Shown piece by piece: positions 5,131 through 48,208 of a stretch of DNA of 64,000 nucleotides (positions are counted from its first letter, which is position 1; each line of letters starts with the position of its first letter). The position numbers and the translations under genes were made by a program. The notes below the pieces were generated by a model. That model was not told the DNA's origin. It saw only the letters and a program-made list of their open reading frames with translations, and did no database searches. This stretch comes from Bispira polyomma (taxonomy: Eukaryota), in contig OZ287752.1 of assembly GCA_965649765.1 (NCBI GenBank), positions 57,908,001 to 57,972,000 of the forward strand, read 5' to 3'.

Positions 5131-7021
5131 CAATAAGTCTCTCTGCCTCTGTGTCCTGTTGTTCGAGCTATGTATTAATCTCTTTTTTGGTCTGACATGT
5201 GATTACATGACCTGTCATACCCACTCCCACTTCCACAACATCCCCTTCCTAGCATGGCTTTTCATCTTACTGCTCAAACTAAAACTTATCAAGACTGGAA
5301 TTATAAATAAAACTCATCAACAGATGTAGAAGTCATAGAACTGGTACGGCAAGGTTTTAATTTTTATAATCACAGTTATGGAGATGAAAAAAGCCGAAAT
5401 CAAGAGAGAGAAACATTAAAAAAATGTACATATACAACAAAAATGGACTTATCTAACGCACAGAGAGGTCCATTTACTTGGAGTACAGTTCTAAATCACT
5501 GGCTTTTCATTTGCATCTGACTTCCCATTTCTGTTGAAAGCTTATGCCTATTTACTGGAAAACATGCAAAAAGTTAAGTCTTTCTTTGACACCGGGTGAC
5601 ACTGGCTTTAATTAATTTTATGTTTTGGTAAACGCTTTGGTAGTCTGATTACAGAAAGCATGTGGCTAGATGTGGTTAGTAATTATTTTTTTTTTGTATA
5701 AAAATCTGTAGATAATCTGATTTCTTCATAAAGCTGACAGGTGAGGTAATACAGAGCATGGGAGTAAAACCATGACATAATTGAATTATTTTCAGTTTGG
5801 GTTTAACGCTGCATTTAAAACATTTTGTGTCATATTGCAGAGATAAGTTAACTGATGGGGGGGGGGGGGGCGATCAGAGCAGGGGGGGAGGGGGGGATCA
5901 GAGCAGGGCAGTTGGTCAAAGTTTTCAACTCTGCTGACTGAATCAACCCTGACTGCACAGGTGGGGGATAAGAATATGATCTGCATGACAATGTCCTACT
6001 AACATATTCCCATGATCTTAGAGAGATCTCAAGACATATCATTTATGTTCATTTATTTATTTTCAATTTAGCATTGCTTTTAACAACCATGTATCATAAA
6101 TACCAACCAAAAGTTTATTAGTTAAGGCAAGCAGTCCAGAGTAGTCGATCAAGATTTATTTACACTACTACAAACCACCGGTCTTCAGCAAGTTTACTGC
6201 TAAATACTCCGATGTATATGCCCTGACTGAGAGAATCCAACCCCAGCTGCAGATGTGGGGAGATAAGAGATATAAGTCTGTTGACACATTGTTGAGTTAT
6301 TTTGGGGTTTTCATTATTGTCAACTGGAGCTAATTAGATTTTTAGATGAGAGAAAATCTATTCTGTGTAAAAAAACTAGATGTGCATGTCACCAACTTTT
6401 AGCAAGTACCTAGCAAATAACTGTTTTCATTCATGCCACAGTCAAACCCAGAAGTACATCCGTGGTGGGAAAGTGTCTTACCACTACACTACGGAGAACT
6501 TCCTTTGACTTTGAATATATCTATTATTGTGATTATTATTATTGATGCTAGGCAGCTTTTAATGTGCAACAAGAGAATTAGTTAATCTATCGTGTAAAGC
6601 TAAAAAGGAAACGATAATGTATGCTTTGATGACAGGCATATTTAATTGAAAATTACGTTTAAATTTATTTTCCTTTTAGTTAAAGTGTTTATACACTTGT
6701 TCTCCAAGAAGGGATATAATCCTACAATATTGCATTTTTCATCTTCAAAATTCTATTATTATGTTCACATCTAGTCCAAAGATGAATAGCGTAGCCTCTC
6801 TTTGTGCTTAAAGAGTTGACGCGATCCTTTCAGCAGTAATTACTGATATGCAATCTGGCATATAGGTCTGAGCTGTGAATGTGTGATATTGTAAATATTA
6901 TGCTGAATAAAATGTTTCAAATCCAATCCAATCTAAAGGCTGTTGTTATCAAACCAATAATAATAATTATCTATATAGCACATTTATTAACATTACTGTT
7001 ATCTAATGTGCTTTGACATTA

Positions 7022-30137: not shown

Positions 30138-31854
30138 ACAATAACCTACTTTCAAATGTTGAAAGTGTTAAACCTGCCTTTACTTGAGTAGGGAAGTGAT
30201 TGCCACAGTGAAAGCGCAAGGGCCACATTTACTAAATGGACTGATACTAGCAGACAAAAAGACATTTTTCAAGAGTTAGTCCACTAAATTGCACCAAATT
30301 TCCTAACGACCAAAAATCTGAGCTGTTTTTGTGCGATTGACCGTCACCTCGTGCTAAATAAAGTATATAATGTGTAGCAAGGAATATCTTTAGATTACAT
30401 ATAGGAAAGTCAGTTAGTTTAAAAAATATTTCATTTACCTTTGCATAGATTTCTAGGATGCACATAATATACCTACCTTGTTTTCAGTGAACTTTAGATT
30501 ATGTGAGGCCAAACAAATCAAAGATCCGATTGAAGGTCAAATGTGGGTGGATTAATAGAAATACTTGGGATAAATGCTTTTATTTACAGGTTAATAAAAT
30601 AATGTGTAAATAGACATCTATACTAGTCATAAACCTATATCCTAGCATAAATGCAATTAAAAATATCAAATAAGTTTAAGCACAAAATTAACCACAATTA
30701 AGAGTATATAAAGCTAATGTAGAAAGTGTAGAATAAATATCTCCAATAATGACATGGTTGGTGACTATATTAAATATGATGCTTGTTGATGCGTTGAATT
30801 TAGAATTTAGTTGCATTTTACATGGCTTACAACTGCTTAGGCCAATTTACGACGACCAGATGTAATAATGTTGGAGGGAACCAGTGCTACAGCAATGTAA
30901 ACCATCAGCCTATGGCAAGTATCAGACAAACTTTGCCACATGAAGTAATGAACGCGTTGACGTCTTGAAAGACAATTTGAAAATGAGGGACAAATTTTAT
31001 TAGTTTTGGTATGGATGAATGCACCAGATTTGTGGTTATGTGGTAAACAAGGAATTACTGTAAAGTAAGTAATTTGTACCCACTGACATTTACCATGCAT
31101 TCTACAATAATTAAATTGAGATGGTCATCCCTATGTACTTAATGTGATCTATTTCCTCTTATATGTCTACCTCATTTAATTGATACAAAGCTACATTGGT
31201 TTTAAGGAGGAGGATGATTGCTTCCAACCAATTCATGAAGGCCATCATATTATTTCTAAGATGGGAGCTCCCTTTTTAAAACCAAAACAACATCGGGCTG
31301 CGCCTAATAAAAACTTCAGGGTTTCTAAGACCCCCCCTCCCCCATTTCTGCCCTATTTTTTCTTATCACTGGAAGATAAATGACGGGAGAACTACGAGTG
31401 AAATCTTTAAAAAGCATAAAGAATTTCTTGCTCAAGATTCACTCAATAAATTAGTTCTGAAACAGACAACTAATCGAAAGGTCACATTAACATTCACTCA
31501 GGAAGTCCCCCATCTTTTTGTGCCTCTTCCCCCTTTTTATTGATTACAGTTGAAAACTGTTGTAAACTGCAAACATTGCACAAGCCTAAATAGGATTTGC
31601 TTGGCTACAAATGAAAGATGAAATGTACTAAAGTTACTACAGTTACCTACAATAAATGTATATGTGGCATAGTATTCTTTTTAAAGAAAAAAAAAACAGC
31701 CATGCACTAAGCCTGTAAAATCAGGTATGTAAATTAGTTGACTTGATATTTGGATCACTTTCATCAGCAATCTATTTTATCGGTGAAAATAATCTCTGAC
31801 TACCTGACTACAAACACAAGAAATTCTATTCAGCTCTCGCCTCGGTGAGGTAGT

Positions 31855-32030
31855 GAATATTTTTCAGCACCACAATCGATGTCCAGGCATTCCCTGTGGC
31901 ACAGATCCTAATCAAGGCCCAGAAGGGACAGTCCCATAATACATAGCATTTGTCATTACCAGTACTTTGCATCTTGTCCAAGGATTAATCTTAATCCCCT
32001 GTAACTATTCCAACTTTTACTGGGAGTCTA
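31855..32030 (-). mobile_element. LINE 3'-end remnant, same family as 4868-5130
   Basis: Shares 18 bp CAATCGATGTCCAGGCAT with the other remnant; upstream minus-strand PSKSWNS motif. Confidence 0.5.
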
Positions 32031-32389
32031 ACAGGGAAATAACCAGACCAATTTTACAGCCGGGAGTTGAACAGGATACCATCTGATTAAAAGACCAATT
32101 CTGTAACGACAATATTTTGTTTTGGGGGATCCATTTCAGTAACTGACCAGCAAAACTACAAGATCAAATAAGATAAATAATTTTGAAAGTTACTCAGTAG
32201 AGTATGTACCTCTGCTCCACAATGCCAAAATTGAAAAAGTTCCCGTTCACCAATCTTTCAAGATCCACTTTAATGGATTCTTCTGCGCCCCATCCTGATT
32301 GGTACAGTTTTTGGGCGAAACAAACAAATCAAGCTGTACTCCAACCCAGGTCTCCTTTCTTTCTAAGTAAGTGTGTGACCCACTAATTA

Positions 32390-32864
32390 TCGTGCTGTTC
32401 CACTTTCAAGATTATAGTCGGGAGGGGCCCTGATTATATCATCATGGCCAATCCTTGGCATTTCTCCACGATTTTTAGAAAAAGATGGGACAATTTACAT
32501 ATAAAGATTAAAAAAGGTTAAAAAAAATTCTTAAGCGAACAAGATAGGTGTTAAATCCACTATGATCTCATAAAGATAAGTTGGCAAGCCTTGCTGTTTC
32601 AGGTGAAATTTAAAATTTTTGTCAATTTTTGGAAAAGATAAGTTGTTGGAAGGAAAATATAACTCTGGAGGGGACCCAACTTATCAGCCGATACATACTT
32701 ACTCGCAGCGGTTTTCTAACATGTTTGAAAACCTCTGCAACCTCATTGATTGGAAAAGCTGAATTTTTTAAGTTGTTAGTGGGCCGAATTGTCCACGATA
32801 ATGGTCTCCAAACTTATAATCGTTAAGGTCGGGGGGATTTAATCGGTATAGTGGAACAGGAGTA
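32390..32864. mobile_element. Non-autonomous PIF/Harbinger MITE
   Basis: TIR core CTGTTCCACT...AGTGGAACAG flanked by TTA and TAA. The reverse complement of the right end (TTCCACTAT..GATT..TCCCCCCGACCTT) matches the left end of the Harbinger at 60530. Confidence 0.7.
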
Positions 32865-35104
32865 TAAAGGATACGGGTATGACGTAATCCTGGTGATGAA
32901 CCAACGAACTGACACACAGCCAAAAACCATCACCTTCTTGTATTGAGGTAATGAATACTAGCCAATGATCATACCACCTATTTTTTAAAGGATCCTGCTC
33001 ATTGTCGATCTAGCTCAGATACAAAAATTAGCTCACTAGAGTGTAACCACACAACCTGCATTTGGGCCACATGCGTCGACATGTCTTGATGAAGCCCATC
33101 AATTTTGAATGGCTATCTGTCAATGGGTCATCAATGAGATCCCAACCCAAGGCCATTCCAATTTGTACTACTACAAAGTAGGTTTCCCTACAAACCTTAA
33201 TGCCTAAACGAAAGCTCTTTCTGAAGCATTATACACTTGTAATGCTCCCTGGGGCAGTTCTCTTTCTGAGTGTGCATTTTTAAAGGGGGGGGGGGGGAGA
33301 CTGGGAAGAAAACTAAGCAAATAAAAGATTTGTAATGATGATTATAGGTAGTCAATGATGAACGACAACAAATAGGTTTAAAAAGACCATGTGTATTTGA
33401 GATAAACTTAAAGGTGAAGTTTAGTTGGAAGAATTTTTAATAAGAGATTGACTTCAAGGAGTTTACCAGAAGTAAGAAGTATAAAAAATTCCAACTTGGG
33501 CTATGATAATATGACAAAATACTAGATGGGCTATGATGCATAGCAACCATCAGTTGCAATCCATAAGAATTGATATGTGTCATCAAAACATATATCACAC
33601 ATCCAAGTAATAGCAATATATTCCAAGCGTGTCAATTTCTTTCTTTTTTTTGAGTTGAGATTTTAATAGCCATAGCTGCTTTCCATTTATGCTACAAGAG
33701 TTACACAATTTCCCACATATGTTTTCGTTTTTTACAAAGCTGTGTTGGAATGTTATGCTATGACATTAGCTATGGTACTAGAGTAGAAAGTAGGCTGGTA
33801 GTTTGTGTTTACTGAGACGTTTACCATGTGGTATGATATATTCTACTCAAAAACTAACAGTTTAAACCGCCCCCTCACCCATGTTATTGGAGTATAAACA
33901 TATTTTAAAAATCACAGTTGTCACTTTTATGCAATTATTTCCAGACACTGTTCACTATTATATGCATTAAATGTCCTTGCTAAAAAAAGAGCCAGGACAT
34001 TTTGGATATGATATAATTTTTATTTTATTATTATTGTTAGACTGTGCAATTCATCCATTTTTATGTCCAATAATATTACTACTGTCACTACTATATGAAT
34101 TACATGCCCTTGCTGATAAATAGCTAGGAATAAAACCATATTCCATTATATAAATGACAACACCAAAAGCAGTGATCCATTTGAAAGATTTGGGAAGACT
34201 GTAATGGACAACAGAATCACGTGACTACATGAAGCTGTAAATAGACGGCATGAAACATTTATCATCCCAGTGAGGCTCAAGATCTTGTAATGAATATAGA
34301 GACCTTGAGTGTAGTAACAGACAAAAACTCAGGGTTTTTACAGCAGTTATATCATCCATGAATCAAAGTGGTTGTCAGCATCTACTTAATTTCAAATCTC
34401 ATTCATCACAAATCCTCTCTTGACAGGGTTCTTCTGACCGGAGATATAATGTGTCAAAGTTAATGTAAACCACTCCACTAAAAACTCAGGTGCTAATGTA
34501 AAACAAAAAAACTTTTTGCAGATAAATAGGATTCCTTGAACTGGTTCAGGGAGTTTTGAGGGTTTAAATGTCTTTATCATTCATCATTGTCAAGTTGTAA
34601 TACAATATATAAAGTGTTACATTGAGTAAAACCTAAAAAAACATTGTGTGCATGCGCTGAGGAGGAGTTTACTTTCTATTGGCTGTTACTAGGTCAAGGT
34701 TGTACTGATGATTTTTTTTGCCAAAAAAATAATTTTCCATATTACGTATAATCTAGTTATTGTAAGAAGCAATAGTAGAACGAAGTACCATATTCACCAC
34801 TTCCTTGAATTGCATTAATTAAAGATATAGGACTTTTGCTTAGCAAGACCAGCACACTCCCAACAGTAGTGGTAATCTTTCTGTCATTTGTAAGTACATG
34901 ATTTGTATTTTTACACAGACAACTTTTTTTTTATACTTTACACAAAGGCTTATACACAAGTTTTGTGTATTTAAAGAAGACTTATATTTGTGTATTTTAT
35001 TTTAAACACTAATATTTCAGTATATTCTATGTAGAGTGTATTCTGCACAGAATAGAGAATATAATAAATGAAATGAACATAAGGCATTTTATTCATTTTA
35101 TTTT

Positions 35105-36040
35105 CTATTCAGAGGCCTTATGTACAAGCTTTGTGTATCCTATAAAGAGGCCTTATGTACAAGCTTTGTGTATCCTTTACAGAGGCCTTATGTACAAGCT
35201 TTGTTTATCCTATACAGGTGCCTTATATACAAGCTTTGTGTATCCTATACAGAGGCCTTATGTACAAGCTTTGTTTATCCTATACAGGTGCCTTATATAC
35301 AAGCTTTGTGTATCCTATACAGAGGCCATATATACAAGCTTTGTGCATCGTTTACAGAGACCTTATGTACAAGCTTTGTGTATCTTTTACAGAGGCCTTA
35401 TGTACAAGCTTTGTTTATCCTATACAGGTGCCTTAGACAACTTTTTTTCTATACTTTACACAAAGGCTTATATACAAGCTTTGTGCATCGTTTACAGAGG
35501 CCTTATATACAACCTTTGTGTATTCAATACAGAGAACTTATGTACAAGCTTTGTGTATCCTATACAGAGGCCTTATGTACAAGCTTTGTGTATTCAATAC
35601 AGAGGCCTTATGTACAAGCTTTGTGTATTCAATACAGAGAACTTATATACAAGCTTTGTGTATCCTATACAGAGACCTTATGTACAATCTTTGTGTATCC
35701 TATACAGAGGCCTTATGTACAAGCTTTGTGTATTCAATACAGAGGCCTTATGTACAAGCTTGGTGTATCCTATACAGAGGCCTTATGTACAAGCTTTGTG
35801 TATCATATACAGAGGCCTTATGTACAAGCTTGTTGTATCCTATAAAGAGGCTTTATATACAAGCTTTGTGTGTCCTATACAGAGGCCTTATGTACAAGCT
35901 TGGTGTATCCTATAAAGAGGCTTTATATACAAGCTTTGTGTGTCCTATAAAGAGGCTTTATATACAAGCTTTGTGTATTCTATACAGAGGCCTTATGTAC
36001 AAGCTTTGTGTATCCTATACAGAGGCCTTATGTACGAGCT
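35105..36040 (+). repeat. 35-bp minisatellite (TGTGTATCCTATACAG|AGGCCTTATGTACAAGCTT), ~27 copies, spanning the 3' splice site of the GPCR TM7 exon
   Basis: First AG at 35111-35112 and last at 36021-36022 are 910 bp = 26x35 apart. The last unit runs directly into coding sequence. A degenerate outlier lies at ~34915-34985. Confidence 0.95.
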
Positions 36041-36176
36041 GCAATGTTCCAGCCTGGTTGTTCAAGATCATCTTCTGGTTGGGTTACTGTAACAGCACCA
36101 TGAATCCTATCATCTACGCATGCTCAAGTCGGGAGTTCAAGAGAGCCTTTATCAGGGTACTGCTCTGTAGATGCAG
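36023..36176 (+). CDS. ADRA1: Alpha-1-adrenergic-like aminergic GPCR, ECL3/TM7/helix-8 exon
   Basis: (E)[51 protein letters not shown] has NPxxY and closely resembles vertebrate alpha-1 [30 protein letters not shown]. Phase-1 acceptor after TM6, as in alpha-1 genes; donor AG|GTATGC at 36177. TM1-6 exon(s) are not in the window. An alpha-type octopamine receptor is the alternative call. Confidence 0.85.
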
Positions 36177-36659
36177 GTATGCCCCACTCCGTTATATGGT
36201 GTAAATGTTATACACAAGTAACTGTTTTTAACAACACATAAAATGCTGTTTCACCTGTTGACCCATAGCACATGATAATATAAACATTTGGATGGCTGCA
36301 ACAAAACTTGGCCTAGATTTTTCTTTTGTCTTGTACAAATAAATAGTAAGAAATCCACGTTATAGAAATGTTATAGAGACATTAGTATGTGAATGGGTTG
36401 CATTAAGAGAATAATAATATTCAATATGGCTGTTGATAGATATTTATGCTAAATATACTCACTGTTATACTTCCTTTAGCTATCCTTATACCCTGGTTCA
36501 AGTTAAAGGCTCTGTCTACATGGATCATAAGTTCTTTATGAATAGGTATGATATATTAGGAAATTGTAAGATAATTGATGAAACATGCAATCTAGTGATA
36601 TATAAATTCAGTGAAAAAATAATGTTATTTGTCACCTCTGTTCTGTTATATTATTGCAG

Positions 36660-36826
36660 ACGGCGATTTCCAGCCTACATTACTAACACAAGCAAGGGTT
36701 ATAGGACAAAGTCTAGACTGGCACGCATGAAGGGAGCCATGAAGTTATGTACCCGAGGTCAGAGTAGTCGTATAAAGAAGACACATAGTTACAGAGGAAC
36801 TCATACCAAAGACAACACTATCTGTT
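36660..36826 (+). CDS. ADRA1: Same GPCR, proximal C-terminal tail exon (first donor shown)
   Basis: Acceptor TTATTGCAG; the phase-2 join gives CRCR-RRFPAYITN...KDNTIC; donor GTT|GTAAGT at 36827 (phase 1). Confidence 0.75.
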
Positions 36827-38434
36827 GTAAGTACAGTTATAAGGGAACTCATACCGAAGATAACATTATCTGTTGTAAGTACAGTTATAGGGGAAATCAT
36901 ACAAAAGACAACATTATCTGTTGTAAGTACAGTTATAGGGGAAATCATACAAAAAACAACATTATCTGTTGTAAGTACAGTTATAGGGGAAATCATACAA
37001 AAGTCAACATTATCTGTTGTAAGTACAGTTACAGGGGAACTTATACCAAAGACAACATTATCTGTTGTAAGTACAGTTATAGGGGAACTTATATCAAAGA
37101 CAACATTATCTGTTGTAAGGAGAGCTATAAGGGAACTCATACCAAAGACAACATTATCTGTTGTAAGTACAGTTGTAAGTACAGTTATGAGGGAACTCAT
37201 ACCAAAGACAACATTATTTGTTGTAAGTACAGTTATAGGGGAAATCATACAAAAGACAACATTATCTGTTGTAAGTACAGTTATAGGGGAACTTATACCA
37301 AAGACAACATTATCTGTTGTAAGTACAGTTATAGGGGAACTCATACCAAAGACAACATTATCTGTTGTAAGTACAGTTATAGGGGAACTCATACCAAAGA
37401 CAACATTATCTGTTGTAAGTACAGTTATAGGGGAACTCATACCAAAGACAACATTATCTGTTGTAAGTACAGTTATAGGCGAACTTATATCAAAGACAAC
37501 ATTATCTGTTGTAAGGAGAGCTATGAAGGAACTCATACCAAAGACAACATTATCTGTTGTAAGTACAGTTGTAAGTACAGTTATGAGGGAACTCATACCA
37601 AAGACAACATTATCTGTTGTAAGTACAGTTATAGGGGAAATCATACAAAACACAACATTATCTGTTGTAAGTACAGTTATAGGCGAACTTATATCAAAGA
37701 CAACATTATCTGTTGTAAGGAGAGCTATAAAGGAACTCATACCAAAGACAACATTATCTGTTGTAAGTACAGTTATAGGGGAAATCATACAAAAGACAAC
37801 ATTATCTGTTGTAAGTACAGTTATAGGGGAAATCATACAAAAGACAACATTATCTGTTGTAAGTACAGTTACAGGGGAACTTATACCAAAGACAACATTA
37901 TCTGTTGTAAGTACAGTTATAAGGGTACTCATATCAAAGACAACATTATCTGTTGTAAGTACAGTTATAGGGAAACTCATACCAAAGACAACATTATCTG
38001 TTGTAAGGAGAGCTATAAGGGAACTCATACCAAAGACAACATTATCTATTGTAAGTACAGTTATAGAGGACTCATATGAAAGACAACACTATCAGTTGTA
38101 AGTACAGTTTTAGGGAGGTCATACCAAAGACAGCACTATCTATTGTAAGTACAGTTATAAGGGTACTCATATCAAAGACAACATTATCTGTTGTAAGTAC
38201 AGTTATAGGGAAACTCATACCAAATACAACACTATCTGTTATACACTTATAGGGGAACTCATACCAAAGACAACATTTTCTGTTGTACATACAGTTATAG
38301 GGGAAATTATACCAAAGACAACATTATCTGTTGTAAGTACAGTTGTAGGGGAACTCATACCAAAGACATCACTATCTGTTGTAAGTACAGTTATAGGGGA
38401 ACTCATACCAAAGACAACACTATCTGTTGTAAGT
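36787..38434 (+). repeat. 48-bp minisatellite (GGAACTCATACCAAAGACAACATTATCTGTT|GTAAGTACAGTTATAGG), ~34 copies, spanning the 5' splice site
   Basis: Unit encodes CCKYSYRGTHTKDNII (16 aa). Nearly every unit has GTAAGT or GTAAGG. The last unit continues into unique intron (GTAAGTTTTTC at 38429). Confidence 0.95.
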
Positions 38435-39939
38435 TTTTCTGGTAAAGATTGTTATGTTCACAGTGATAAGCAATGACACCCAAATGAAGTGCTAACCTGA
38501 TCCCTCAGTATAGAATTTGATTCTATCCCCCTTTGTATATCCATGGTAGCCAGATATAGAGCTATAATCACCCTGTCTCAGATATATCCCCACAAGGGCC
38601 AGGGGTTTGTATTAGAAAAACAAAATTTCTAGCTTAACTTGGACACTCAAACTGCCATCTATTTTCTCCATACTGAAATATGTATTCAAATGAATACTCA
38701 ATAGGTGAGATAGGTGCAAATTCCTATAAATAACTTTTTGTTCAGTTGAGTAAGAGTTATTAGGCTTCAAGGCCTCACCTGACCTTGAGTGACCTTGGAA
38801 CAAGCGAGAGATGAAGTTTGGGATACCATTTATTATTTATGCAATTTATTTACAGACTAATGTAAATGACATCTTAAACAGACTTTAACAACTTAAATTA
38901 AGCAAAAGTTAAGGTTTCCTTAAATATGGTTGACGCCTTTGAATTGACAGAAATAATGAGTTCAGATTTAAATTCTAAATGAATGAGCTGTTAAAAACAT
39001 CTCTACATAACCTTACATTTAGGTTAAAATGAGCCACTTGGGGCCTTTTTTGAATTGCAGACGATTAGGTCAAATATAAATTACACCAATGTATGGTCCT
39101 TAATCTATGCTGGGGATAGGGCCCTTGGTCATTGGAGTATGCTACAGAAAAGGATAGACAACACTGCCACTTGAAATCAATAGCCAGTGTCTGGGGGATT
39201 CTGATTAGCAAGGCAAACCTCTAACACTACTTTATTTGCTCCTATAAAATTTAATAAACCAGCAGACAGGGAAAGAGGGGTGAGGGGGTGAGATATCCTT
39301 GTGTTTTTTTAATAGCCTATGCAAAGCTACAGGGGACAGATAGTTTACATGTACATATATCCATCTGGCGGTGAAATTTCTCCCCGATGATTTTTTTGGT
39401 ACTGGGACTATGATTTAATAACACAGGTTTGTTCAGCTTTAAAAGGGTTCACCAATAACTTTGTTTAGGGAGTCCCTTATGTATTTGTATTTTGGTTGAG
39501 TGTTTACCTGATCAGTCAATTTTACATTAATGTCAAACGTTTGTAGATAAAATCCTTCTTTTCATCTAAATTTACCAAAAACCCTTAAGAAGATAAAATA
39601 AGGCATTTTAATATTTCTATATATTTAATATTTACATTTGTAAGTGTCTGAATATCTTTTATTAAAATTTCAATATTTATAACACTAAAAGTGAATATAT
39701 TTTCAAAAGTTTATAATCGAGTGTATAATTGGCTAGGAATTTAAAAAAAATCAGTAATTTTCCCCTTAATTTTACTATTAATACTTTTTGGGGGGAAATA
39801 TAGGTATAAATTTTTAGTTAGAAATGATTATAATTATGTACTCTCATTATCAAAAACACAGGTTAGCTAAATTTAATTCCTTGTGACAATGTCCACTTTA
39901 CACCACATCAATTCTTATTGTTCTTGTTATTTTTATCAG

Positions 39940-40838
39940 CATCACAAAGTGCCAACAAACTGAACCCTCAGACAGCTTGGTCTAATCCATCCCATAGTAG
40001 CCACATGGTGCGTAAAGAGACCATGGACTCGTTAGTGATCAGCGATGACGAATCTGCAATTCACGAGTTCTCCTCCTCGGAAAGTGAAGGTGATGGTATG
40101 GACGATGGTTTGCTGATGCGTACGAACAGAGAGAACAACAACTACCAGTGTCACTTGTCAGAACAGGACGCCACCAAGATCAGGTTCAAAGACATGGATG
40201 CTGTGATATACAGCAACCGAGGTACTGCAGATGTCATCATCGAGGATAACGCGATGTTACAGACCAATGGGATTCAGCCCCACCAAAAGATCAAGAGCAG
40301 AAACGTCAGTGCTTCAGACAGTGAACTCTATAACAGGAGTCACATGTACTTGTGCAGCCATAGACACAAGAAGTACAACTGTGGCTACAGTGCCATAAAG
40401 CAAGAGGACACCATAGACCACGAACTCCCTTCCCTCAATACTGGCTGTGATTCCCAGTATAGAAGAGAAAGACTCAGTACCGTACCAAACCGAGCAGTCA
40501 CCTTGAAAGGGATCCCTTACCATATAGAAGTGAACCCTGACGCAGCAGCAGTAGGCTTAGGTGAACCTGGTGATTTACAGGGATCAATTTGTGCTTCGCA
40601 AGAAACCGTTCTGTCAGCAATTACTGACAACTGTGATGTAATGAGAGGCCCTGGCCATACCAGAGATACAGGTGTAGATGTTAATTCAGCTGAAAAGACT
40701 TGTGGCCAACAGTCTCAGCAAAGTAAATCAACAGAAGTAAATAAAAAGTTGGACCAGGGTACTAGTTTAAAGAAGGTAAACTATGTGTCTGTGCCAATTA
40801 TAGTCATAGACCCAAACAATGGGACCAATGATAACTAA
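39940..40838 (+). CDS. ADRA1: Same GPCR, terminal coding exon (long Ser/acidic intracellular tail)
   Basis: Polypyrimidine tract plus TCAG acceptor at 39938-39939; phase 1 fits the 36827 donor (T|CA = Ser). ~299 open codons to TAA; AATAAA near 40999. Confidence 0.75.
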
Positions 40839-41337
40839 ATACCAAGGTTTCCTGTATCACAACGTCCTCTACAACACTCAAGATGTTCTGCATGAATCCA
40901 TTATTAATACGGCTACAAAGACTGCTACAAAGGGGGCATATTAACATCAGAACTCAAGATAAAATGTTTATTTTTTGTTAATCATACTATATATTTGTAA
41001 TAAAATTTTGCGTTATAACCATGTTTTTTGTTGTTGTTTCTAAATCATATTGATAGTTATGAGCACATATTTATTTATATATCTTTTTATTAATATACTG
41101 CATCCAGTATCATTCTGGTTTAAATACAGCAGATTGTTTTGGGGTAAAAAAGTCTTGAAATTACAAGTCATCATTGGCAATTTAGCAATGTATTGAATGC
41201 ATTGTTCTCAAGATACCAAGTAACAAAATAGTCCATATATAGTCTTGTTTTTTAAATACCACAAACTGAAAGATGATTATTCAGTTATAATCTAAAAACA
41301 TTTGGTCCAATACATCTACAGTCAACCCCCTTGAAGT

Positions 41338-41592
41338 TTGAATTTTGAATTGAGATATTTAACGTCCACTCTAGTAAATGTTTAGGTTATATTGGGACGG
41401 GTAGTTGAAAACGCTGGAGGAAACACTGCATACAGTTGATCAAGGTTCTGCACTGAAACCAGCGGCCCACACTAAGGAACTGCCACCTTTCACATGTTGG
41501 CATCGACAGGAGTCGAACTCACACTGCCCAGATGTAAGAGACCAGTGATTTTGAAGTGCAATGCTTGCTAACCACTAGGCCACCGCGGCCCC
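41338..41592 (-). mobile_element. SINE family B copy
   Basis: Aligns end to end with 25917-26168; imperfect TSD CAACCCC(C)T. Confidence 0.88.
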
Positions 41593-43094: not shown

Positions 43095-45083
43095 TTAATC
43101 GCAGGTCAGCTTAATAGCCCAGTTATCATTATTAATGGTGTCTGGTTTCTTGAGGTTTAGGTGATCATCATGTCCTTCAGCACACATCTGCCATGCAGAA
43201 TCCCTGGCCTCTATTGCAGATGCTTTGTCTCTGGCACAGTATATACCAAATAGCTGCCCTTTATTATTGGCGTCTAAGTAAATCTCAAACTTATCTCCCT
43301 CACTGATGATCTTTTCTCCGAAAATAAAGTCTAGTTCATCCCTGACCTTCGTCACCGAGCACTGGTTGCTACTACCTTCTGACGGGAAATGCCTGATAGT
43401 CACAAGCGTTTCATCTTTGCAGGTTTTAGGATCATTCTGCTGGCCATCGGTCAAGGTCATCGCATGTTTCACTTCTAGACAGAGCGATTCATCTTTTCTC
43501 GGACGAACTTGATGAATACCATAGATATCTCCTTGTTTCACTTGGATCCCCTCTTTGAGAGGGTATGTACAGTTGCCGACTTGGCTAATGGCCCCAATGG
43601 GAAGGCCAGCACCATTTTCCACATACACCTTGAAATAGCAGACACTGTAGAGATTCTCCAGTGATTCCGAAAACCAGGAGAGCCAGTTCCTACTGGCAGG
43701 GTCTGGAGGGCTGTCTTCACTCTGTGTCACCTCTTCCTGGGTATAGTAAGGAGGCTAGGGACCCATACCATCTGAGACATCATGTAGATAGAACCGGAAG
43801 TGATTATCAGTGTACCTGGCATTAGAACAGGTAGAGGAAGAGGTGGGTACTTCACTGCTGTATAATTTGGACAAAGGCCCTGTTTCATTTGTAGGAATAC
43901 CTGAAGGGGTTAGCTTTGCATGGAGTGACTGAATGCCAATATTATCTATCAAAGTGTCATATTCAAGAGCATCACTAATAGTCTTAGGCATCCCTATATC
44001 ATCTCTATCAGCTAAATCAGGGTATAGCATCCTCCCTTCATATTCAGCCACAAGATAACCACTAAAAGGATAAGACATAAATTCACATATATTAAGAATA
44101 CACAGCCCATTTATGTCCCCATTGTCTAAGCTGGACCTCACAGTCATTGCACTGGCAAAGATATGACCGCTGGAACTTCTTTGATCATCATTTATGACCG
44201 ACCTGACTGTTCCACCAATCAATTGATTTTGTTCTGCGAAGGAATTGTCATAATATAGTCGTACTTTGGCATAGCAGGTGTCAAATCCAGTGCCATACAA
44301 GCTAATCCATGTTTTTGGTGGAATTTCAATTTCACTTTGGTGAGTTGATAGGTCAGCGCTGGTTCTTTCCCAATATCCAGAGTTTCTGCTGAGAAACATA
44401 GAAAGGTAATCAGCCACTTTTAATTTTGAGTTATCCAAAGTCACCTGGACCTTGTCAGCTACATGTAATTCCTTCCCAGTCTGGCCATCAAACAGTTTCA
44501 GCAGGAACATCCCATACGTTTTAAATAAATCTACTTCTCCCTTGGAAGTAAGTGTTGTATAGTCCCCGGGGGATAGCATCATTGTTAAATGATTTCTTGG
44601 ATCCACCACAGCTGAGTAGGCTTTAGCTTCCCCAGTAAAGATTTCTCCTGATTCATTATAAACTGAACCCGGTGGAATTGAAATATCGATGAATGGATTC
44701 GGATACCCGATGTCCAAGTTTGTGAATTCCTGTCTAATTATATTGACAGTTCCATGGCTATGAAATGGCATCATATAGATATCCACATGCAGAATCGGCG
44801 TGGGGTTGTTAGGAAGATGTAAAATCTTTGTTGTTTCCGCGTAATTATAGTCTTCATCTTGTACAGTTATGGCAAGGCGGCGAATGGTTGAAGGGATATC
44901 CAAAACAAAGTCACCCTCATGCCTAGGAGGGTACTCAATCTCTGTACCATTAATGAGAACATGAGGGAATGGAATTGGCAGACCCGTATCGCTGGCAAGA
45001 ACTTGGCCCACAATTAGCACCGAATGGTCTGCACAGATACTACATCCACATTCCGTCACCATGAATACTGGCAGACGGAGTCT
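43095..45083 (-). pseudogene. CILP: CILP-like gene (minus copy), large terminal exon interrupted by an in-frame TAG at 43755-43757
   Basis: Acceptor TTATTAG|AGACTC (phase 0). Motifs VTECGC, VDPRN..SPGD, FKTYGMF, CYAKVR, NHFRFY, WLSWF, CYFKV and GIYC are CILP C-terminal features. ORFs 43755-45062 and 43095-43730 share a frame and are separated by one TAG. Confidence 0.8.
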
Positions 45084-47774: not shown

Positions 47775-48035
47775 CTATCTTCTGGATGTGTATGACTATG
47801 GAAGACCCTGTCACCTCTCCATATGCACTGATCAAATCCCCCCTTCTAAACTCCAAAGAGATGTCCATACAACAATCATCAATAGTGAATTCCCCCTCAG
47901 TGTTGGTCCTGTCTGCCACTGTTACATTTTGTAAAGGTATATTGGTGGGGCTGAGGACTTTACCAGTCACTGTGTTACCAGGACAGAGACACCTCTCACA
48001 GCCAGGGCTAGCATCATGGGAACATCTGTCACATG
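47775..48035 (-). CDS. CILP: CILP-like (minus copy) carboxypeptidase-regulatory-like domain exon; most 5' exon found for this copy
   Basis: CDRCSHDASPGCERCLCPGNTVTGKVLSPTNIPLQNVTV...GEFTIDDCC...QKI; TTTTTAG acceptor, GTAGGT donor; paralogous to 51598-51897. Confidence 0.8.
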
Positions 48036-48208
48036 CTAAAAAAAGGCATGGTTAATAGAGGACACCTCTCAGAGCCAGGGCATTATCAGAACATCTGACA
48101 CAGGCCACAACAGATAAACCATGGGTAAAGGAGGGTTCTTCCCAGAGGCTTACATCATCAAAACATCTGTCAAAGGCTACAACAGATAAACCATGTTAAA
48201 AGGAGGAC
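47988..48208 (-). repeat. Three diverged ~70-bp tandem copies of the CILP-like exon acceptor junction
   Basis: AACATCTG anchors at 48021, 48090 and 48162; GACACCTCTC at 47988 and 48061. The first copy is the real exon start. Confidence 0.75.

Follow-up and report, generated by a model that had tools for sequence, protein, structure and literature searches.

A 48-bp minisatellite that reiterates a splice donor at the C-terminal tail of an alpha-1-adrenergic-type receptor gene in Bispira polyomma

Minisatellites whose first monomer lies across an exon-intron boundary have been described in the human genes F7, IFI6, CBS, LMNB2 and PDGF (Borensztajn et al. 2006, PMC1557585). The VNTR of F7 intron 7 has a unit of 37 bp present in 5-9 copies, and the first donor alone is used (PMC1557585). 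The F7 pseudo-sites are able to act as donors but are outcompeted by the site lying furthest upstream, an outcome that the authors explained by scanning oriented from 5' to 3' (PMC1557585). The authentic donor alone is used in LMNB2 and PDGF as well, while in IFI6, which has 25 pseudo-sites, and in CBS the authentic donor and two pseudo-sites are used (PMC1557585). Three IFI6 mRNAs derive from two downstream repeat units (PMC4526556).

Here we describe an array of the same layout, found in a 64,000-nt stretch of DNA (the whole of the stretch that was analysed, hereafter the window) that does not contain any N. By structural criteria, the array is a member of the known class of exon-intron-junction minisatellites. 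As regards the size of the repeat and the type of the host gene, a different human locus comes close to it. The coding VNTR in exon 3 of DRD4, an aminergic GPCR gene, has a unit of 48 bp (16 aa) in variable copy number and encodes a cytoplasmic segment; the whole of this repeat belongs to a constitutive exon (third loop), and translation always includes it.

The receptor gene and its orthologous locus

The preliminary description of this DNA had placed the array in the C-terminal tail of a GPCR. This assignment held, on the basis of the Pfam 7tm_1 matches and of the reading frame, which continues from the TM7 exon into the tail exon. The exons of the gene and the adjacent gene are the following.

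L022:4360-5491 (window coordinates about -5640 to -4509), TM1-6 coding exon, donor in phase 1
36023..36176, plus strand, TM7 exon with the NPIIY motif (Pfam 7tm_1 to the profile end), donor GT at 36177, ends in phase 2
36660..36826, plus strand, penultimate coding exon, of 55 codons and split codons, for the C-terminal tail, ends in phase 1 (frame continued from the TM7 exon; ortholog)
39940..40838, plus strand, last coding exon, 298 codons, stop codon 40836-40838; the acceptor cag/CATCA takes phase 1 (ORF, ortholog)
43095-45062, minus strand, CILP-like gene (Pfam CILP, CILP_8th and CILP_C), syntenic at the orthologous locus L016; conserved blocks extend to about 48040

The TM1-6 exon lies outside the window, 4.5 kb before its start, and its phase-1 donor fits the acceptor at 36022/36023, with an intron of about 40.5 kb between the two. 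Pfam 7tm_1 matched L022:4360-5490 with E = 2.9e-67 and the TM7 exon with E = 1.2e-5, and the motifs DRYIGV and CWFPFF were found in the TM1-6 exon, and NPIIY in the TM7 exon. The best relative of solved structure (PDB) was human alpha-1A (E = 2.6e-87), with 296 bits as compared to 198 bits for the next family, 5-HT1A. Among molluscs, annelids and nemerteans, proteins named alpha-1A adrenergic receptor(-like) share 60-69% identity with the TM1-6 exon, which places the host in the lophotrochozoans; the named database matches of this exon were alpha-1A, alpha-1B or alpha-1D adrenergic receptor(-like) entries. Judging from these matches, the gene is an alpha-1-adrenergic-type rhodopsin-class GPCR; the receptor was searched exon by exon, and the alpha-1 affinity is drawn from match scores. 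No Pfam domain was found in the C-terminal tail.

Among 5.8 billion sequences, a word-index search returned a single relative of the last-exon protein, the ortholog ORF P0001 (55% identity). When an exhaustive search of representative sequences was carried out, it gave P0001 and one weak, repetitive match, P0122. The contig encoding P0001 gave locus L016, which is syntenic with the window, having the same CILP-like gene next to the receptor on the minus strand. The TM7 exon aligns with L016:6504-6668 at 92% amino acid identity and 91% DNA identity; the tail exon 36660-36826 aligns with L016:7769-7927 at 65% amino acid identity, with acceptor and donor at the same positions; and the last exon aligns with P0001, encoded at L016:10020-10891, at 55-58% amino acid identity, again with the acceptor at the same place. 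The donor of L016, G/GTGAGTAC, falls in the same alignment column as 36826/36827. Between window and L016, the TM7 exon had a dN/dS ratio of 0.07, the tail exon one of 0.12 and the last exon one of 0.20, with dS near saturation.

From these ratios and the conserved positions it follows that all three exons are real and under purifying selection, and that the first donor, at 36827, is the ancestral one. No tandem repeat was found at either receptor junction of L016. Since dN/dS is 0.07-0.20 and dS is nearly saturated, the comparison also indicates that the array is lineage-specific and arose in the lineage of the window after a deep split. The repeat does not lie inside a constitutive coding exon, as a coding VNTR would, because the exon of the ortholog ends at the first donor and contains no repeat.

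Structure, variation and surroundings of the array

Tandem Repeats Finder (TRF) reported one array at 36787-38434 with a period of 48, 34.0 copies, 86% matches, 3% indels and a score of 2422. Its parts are listed below.

36787..38434, plus strand, 48-bp x 34.0 minisatellite, the unit consisting of exon end and donor (TRF, genome pattern search, k-mer depth)
36827..36832, plus strand, GTAAGT in phase 1, the authentic splice donor (orthologous: it shares its alignment column with the donor of L016)
36875..38056, plus strand, 27 reiterated phase-1 pseudo-donors upstream of the first in-frame stop, the last GTAAG starting at 38051 (scan)
37066..37665, plus strand, higher-order duplication within the array, lag 396 bp, carrying both 12-bp half-units (block identity)
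38050..38434, plus strand, degenerate 3' end of the array, with frameshifts, a stop and lost donors (scan, unit alignment)

The array begins 40 nt inside coding exon 36660-36826, that is, 40 nt before donor 36827. The last 40 nt of this exon constitute the exonic part of the first monomer, and the 48-bp unit is made up of these 40 nt and the first 8 nt of the intron, donor included. The first monomer spans the exon-intron boundary, the exon end being set by the ortholog alignment, and the authentic donor is reiterated in the intron that follows.

The preliminary description had reported about 34 tandem GTAAG donors mostly in one phase, a unit formed by exon end and donor, and an open frame growing by about 16 aa per step, and the scan of the sequence bore out each of these features. 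Exactly 34 GTAAG sites are present, from 36827 to 38429, and 31 of them are in phase 1 with respect to the exon frame starting at 36661. The period of 48 is divisible by 3 and frame 36661 stays open up to 38077, the first in-frame stop of the array being 38077-38079; each 48-nt step encodes 16 aa with the consensus CKYSYRGTHTKDNIIC. This stop is preceded by 28 phase-1 GTAAG sites, 25 of which match the authentic donor in sequence. Over the whole array, the 12-nt context gtt/GTAAGTACA is identical at 27 of the 34 sites, and the variants include four GTAAGG and two sites with att ahead of the cut. Since the phases of exon and acceptor match, any of the 28 in-phase donors would keep the frame, in agreement with the earlier statement that any donor from 36827 to about 38051 would be in phase with the acceptor at 39940. 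A di-cysteine arises only when the array is translated; in the product of the first donor there is only one Cys, after which Ser follows across the junction. The two 12-bp internal insertions seen in the preliminary description were located at 37162-37173 and 37558-37569, and its caveat that two other frames are open also stands, these being plus-strand frame 36662 and one minus-strand ORF at 36745-38028.

A 192-nt piece of the array matched only itself in the 1.035-Gb genome, and when a 28-nt pattern of the unit was searched with up to 2 mismatches, all of the 22 matches in the same 1.035 Gb fell within the array. The unit being confined to this locus, an origin from a dispersed repeat was ruled out. 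Reads came from three public DNA runs (X1, X2 and X3, as Logan contigs) from two samples of one study; all three behave as genomic, with contigs that cross introns at flat depth. Contigs within the array had depths of 6.1, 7.3, 2.8, 1.8 and 1.2 times the flanks, and the 31-mer multiplicities of the same stretches in the assembly were 7.15, 7.15, 2.3, 2.0 and 1.2, so that the ratios agree. They fit the multiplicity of the reference in both samples, while the Logan contigs themselves collapse or fragment the array. The presence of the array in raw reads, which the preliminary description had left to be checked, is thereby confirmed, as k-mer depths in the three runs agree with the assembled copy numbers. 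The array is real and specific to this locus.

It is accordingly hardly conceivable that the array is an artefact of assembly or a copy of a dispersed satellite or transposon. What could suggest an artefact is that the Logan contigs of X1 and X2 leap from 36795 to 38398, but this leap is a graph shortcut through a 37-nt word common to the first and the last units, and the agreement of depths and multiplicities in both samples, together with X3 contigs in every bin of the array, argues against it. No splice joint was read in these runs, the only joint, 36795 to 38398, being this de Bruijn shortcut. Short-read graphs will under-call this array.

Variation between the units was analysed in the 25 full in-frame units, which carry 21 variant types, 7 synonymous and 14 non-synonymous, distributed as 7/6/8 on codon positions 1/2/3. 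The synonymous share is 33%, as compared to 17% predicted for random mutation of the consensus, a slight excess based on small numbers. No unit variant creates a stop, only about 1.3 such variants being expected. No signal of coding constraint was thus detected in the variant types of these 25 units, the numbers being small, and the variation looks neutral.

ACACTATC (ACACT state) is found in the first monomer, that is, the exon copy, and in the last two units, the same state being suggested by the ortholog, whereas the interior units have been homogenised to ACATTATC (ACATT). Edge units that escape homogenisation are a pattern typical of unequal exchange. Blocks 37066-37269 and 37462-37665 are identical at 199 of 204 positions with a lag of 396 bp, at which the self-similarity of the array is 0.88. 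As the 12-bp half-unit lies within the duplicated 204-bp block, the two insertions represent one event that was copied. The array is decayed at its 3' end. Two 47-bp units cause frameshifts there, the stop lies at 38077-38079, and GTAAG has been lost from two units, while the last units retain the exon-like ACACTATC variant. In the exon the unit opens with AGTTAC, and at the start of the intron GTAAGTAC is followed by AGTTAT, while the intron of the ortholog begins with GTGAGTAC followed by GGCTAT. The short AGTTA(C/T) direct repeat, with its two elements 48 nt apart, may have primed the first slippage.

A further array is found at the preceding junction of the same gene.

35105..36040, plus strand, 35-bp x 26.7 array that includes the acceptor of the TM7 exon and about 18 nt of the exon's start (TRF)

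This array is unique to its locus in the genome and absent from L016. The TM7 acceptor at 36022/36023, which is orthologous and in phase with the TM1-6 exon, is the last copy of the 35-bp array. On L016, one diverged extra copy of acceptor and exon start is seen at 6394-6442, about 110 bp upstream (tblastn E = 0.17). The 164 kb examined contain 16 arrays, of which the 48-bp array alone carries GTRAGT, a number of arrays too small for an enrichment test. The two largest of the 16 are both on splice junctions of this receptor gene, where about 0.1 would be expected by a rough post-hoc estimate. That both lie on the junctions of one gene by chance is unlikely on this figure, which, being rough and post hoc, is no proof alone.

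Three intronic blocks (31360-31497, 33056-33261 and 39076-39275) are 74-80% identical to L016 despite nearly saturated synonymous sites. They have stops in all frames and no Rfam match, and both of the blocks searched for in the genome occur there once. We regard them as candidate conserved non-coding elements, one of which lies in the same intron as the 48-bp array. Over 30500-41500, Rfam gave nothing but sub-threshold noise from miRNA models within the 48-bp array, at 26 bits where the gathering score is 100. Further downstream, in the region of the CILP-like gene, a degenerate direct repeat of ~72 bp x 3 (67-85% identity) is present at 47988-48208 and adjoins the block 47814-48015, conserved in L016; this repeat was not reported by Tandem Repeats Finder, even at score 30.

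Choice among the reiterated donors

The explanation that we favour, and hold to be reasonably probable, is that of a young, lineage-specific and neutral exon-intron-junction minisatellite located in the last intron, with splicing taking place from the first donor. A 48-bp segment, consisting of 40 nt of exon and 8 nt of intron with a strong GTAAGT donor, would have been duplicated in tandem. The first duplication was probably aided by the AGTTA(C/T) direct repeat 48 nt apart, a slippage origin that we infer, and the expansion to 34 copies would have proceeded via unequal exchange, including the 396-bp multi-unit duplication. The copies after the first are all contained in the 3.1-kb last intron. 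Donor 36827 would be joined to 39940 in all or nearly all transcripts, and the downstream copies would behave as silent pseudo-donors that are removed with the intron, while the array evolves neutrally. The use of the first donor is what one would expect by analogy with human genes. Against it stands the fact that the 27 main pseudo-donors share at least 12 identical nt with the authentic donor and, from +1 to +7, pair with U1, so that no sequence feature favours the first donor. Moreover, the first-donor rule is taken from mammals, and the choice of splice sites in lophotrochozoans may follow other rules. The frame is open over 28 donors, which speaks against neutrality, though two more frames are open as well; the slight excess of synonymous variants, on small numbers, points the same way. 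If IFI6 and CBS are taken as a guide, exclusive use of the first donor would also be questioned by the few downstream copies that are in use in those genes (PMC1557585).

Several of the 28 in-phase donors might instead be used, in which case each step would add a 16-aa Cys/Lys/Tyr-rich block to the tail and the length of the VNTR would set the range of isoforms. This ladder of isoforms is rather unlikely in our opinion, even though 28 donors are in phase, with 25 of the same sequence as the authentic donor, the frame is open to 38077, and junction minisatellites can supply extra donors in IFI6 and CBS (PMC1557585, PMC4526556). No RNA structure masking the donors was observed either, the predicted fold around them being not unusual (z = +0.55). 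On the other hand, the known cases use at most 2 extra sites, and none in F7, LMNB2 and PDGF; no coding constraint was detected in the units, two further frames are equally open, and the array is absent from the ortholog. When the exon and three units, taken from within the 548-aa ORF, were used as a query, no protein with the repeat was found in the 5.8-billion-sequence database at 301-959 aa. The wider proposition, that the reiterated donors are used to give a ladder of tail lengths, with a heritable and rapidly mutating copy number determining its range, and that in addition minisatellites are seeded on splice junctions throughout the genome, we hold to be improbable. A similarly low credence is given to unproductive splicing, by which the donors nearest to the acceptor (38333-38429) or those out of phase would be used in part of the transcripts; with stop 38077 upstream of the last junction, truncated or decay-prone mRNAs would then lower the output of receptor. 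The six GTAAG sites past the stop, three of which are out of phase, would allow it, and when strong donors were duplicated in classical experiments in vitro, splicing often preferred the copy nearest to the acceptor. Conflicting results on duplicated donors are acknowledged in the discussion of PMC1557585, and in cells the upstream site wins in the F7 experiments (PMC1557585). The last exon is moreover intact and conserved, although the array has perhaps not existed long enough for decay to become visible. Read-through of the first donor, with the transcript ending in the intron and a tail that comprises the whole repeat up to 38077, appears very improbable: the frame is open from the exon to that stop and an AATAAA is present at 39253, but this first poly(A) hexamer is found 1.2 kb beyond the stop, and the spliced form is favoured by the conservation of donor, acceptor and last exon (dN/dS 0.20).

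The neutral minisatellite spliced from its first donor, our preferred reading, would make the array a neat but probably ordinary intronic repeat. Minisatellites with a reiterated splice donor are a known oddity, of which the array is nevertheless a new and extreme example. With 28 strong in-phase donors before a single acceptor, it offers a natural, non-mammalian test of the choice among equal 5' splice sites, which bears on the oriented-scanning rule proposed for human F7. If the downstream donors were used, the cytoplasmic tail of an adrenergic-type receptor would vary in length in a heritable manner. The same gene carries a second junction array, at the neighbouring acceptor, and this raises the separate question of whether splice junctions are preferred seeds of minisatellites in this species.

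Comparison with known systems

Among lophotrochozoan alpha-1 receptors, of which the Platynereis dumerilii Alpha-1 adrenergic receptor entry is a similar example, the receptor described here is distinguished by its long C-terminal tail, encoded by the last two exons, for which P0001 is the only detectable relative.

The array resembles the F7 VNTR in that the first monomer spans the boundary and identical pseudo-donors, which come after the authentic one, compete for one acceptor. In F7, however, the 5-9 copies include only 4 exon bases each, the donor is weak and the unit length, 37 bp, is not divisible by 3, whereas here we find 34 copies, 40 exon bases per unit, a GTAAGT donor (pairing with U1 from +1 to +7) and a unit of 48 bp that keeps the frame. 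The splicing outcome is known in F7, where only the first site is used; at the present locus, use of the first site is a prediction.

The VNTRs of IFI6 (6-16) intron 2 and CBS intron 13 are likewise junction-spanning arrays that reiterate the donor. IFI6 has a short unit, of 12 nt, which keeps the frame, and its two extra donors lead to longer protein isoforms, a small version of the ladder considered above. Only the two copies nearest to the exon are used in IFI6, despite about 25 pseudo-sites, and this use of extra donors has been demonstrated, whereas at the present locus it is hypothetical.

With DRD4 the array shares the 48-bp, 16-aa unit in an aminergic-type GPCR. Unlike the DRD4 repeat, it is located past a conserved donor, and only the use of alternative donors would bring it into the translated sequence.
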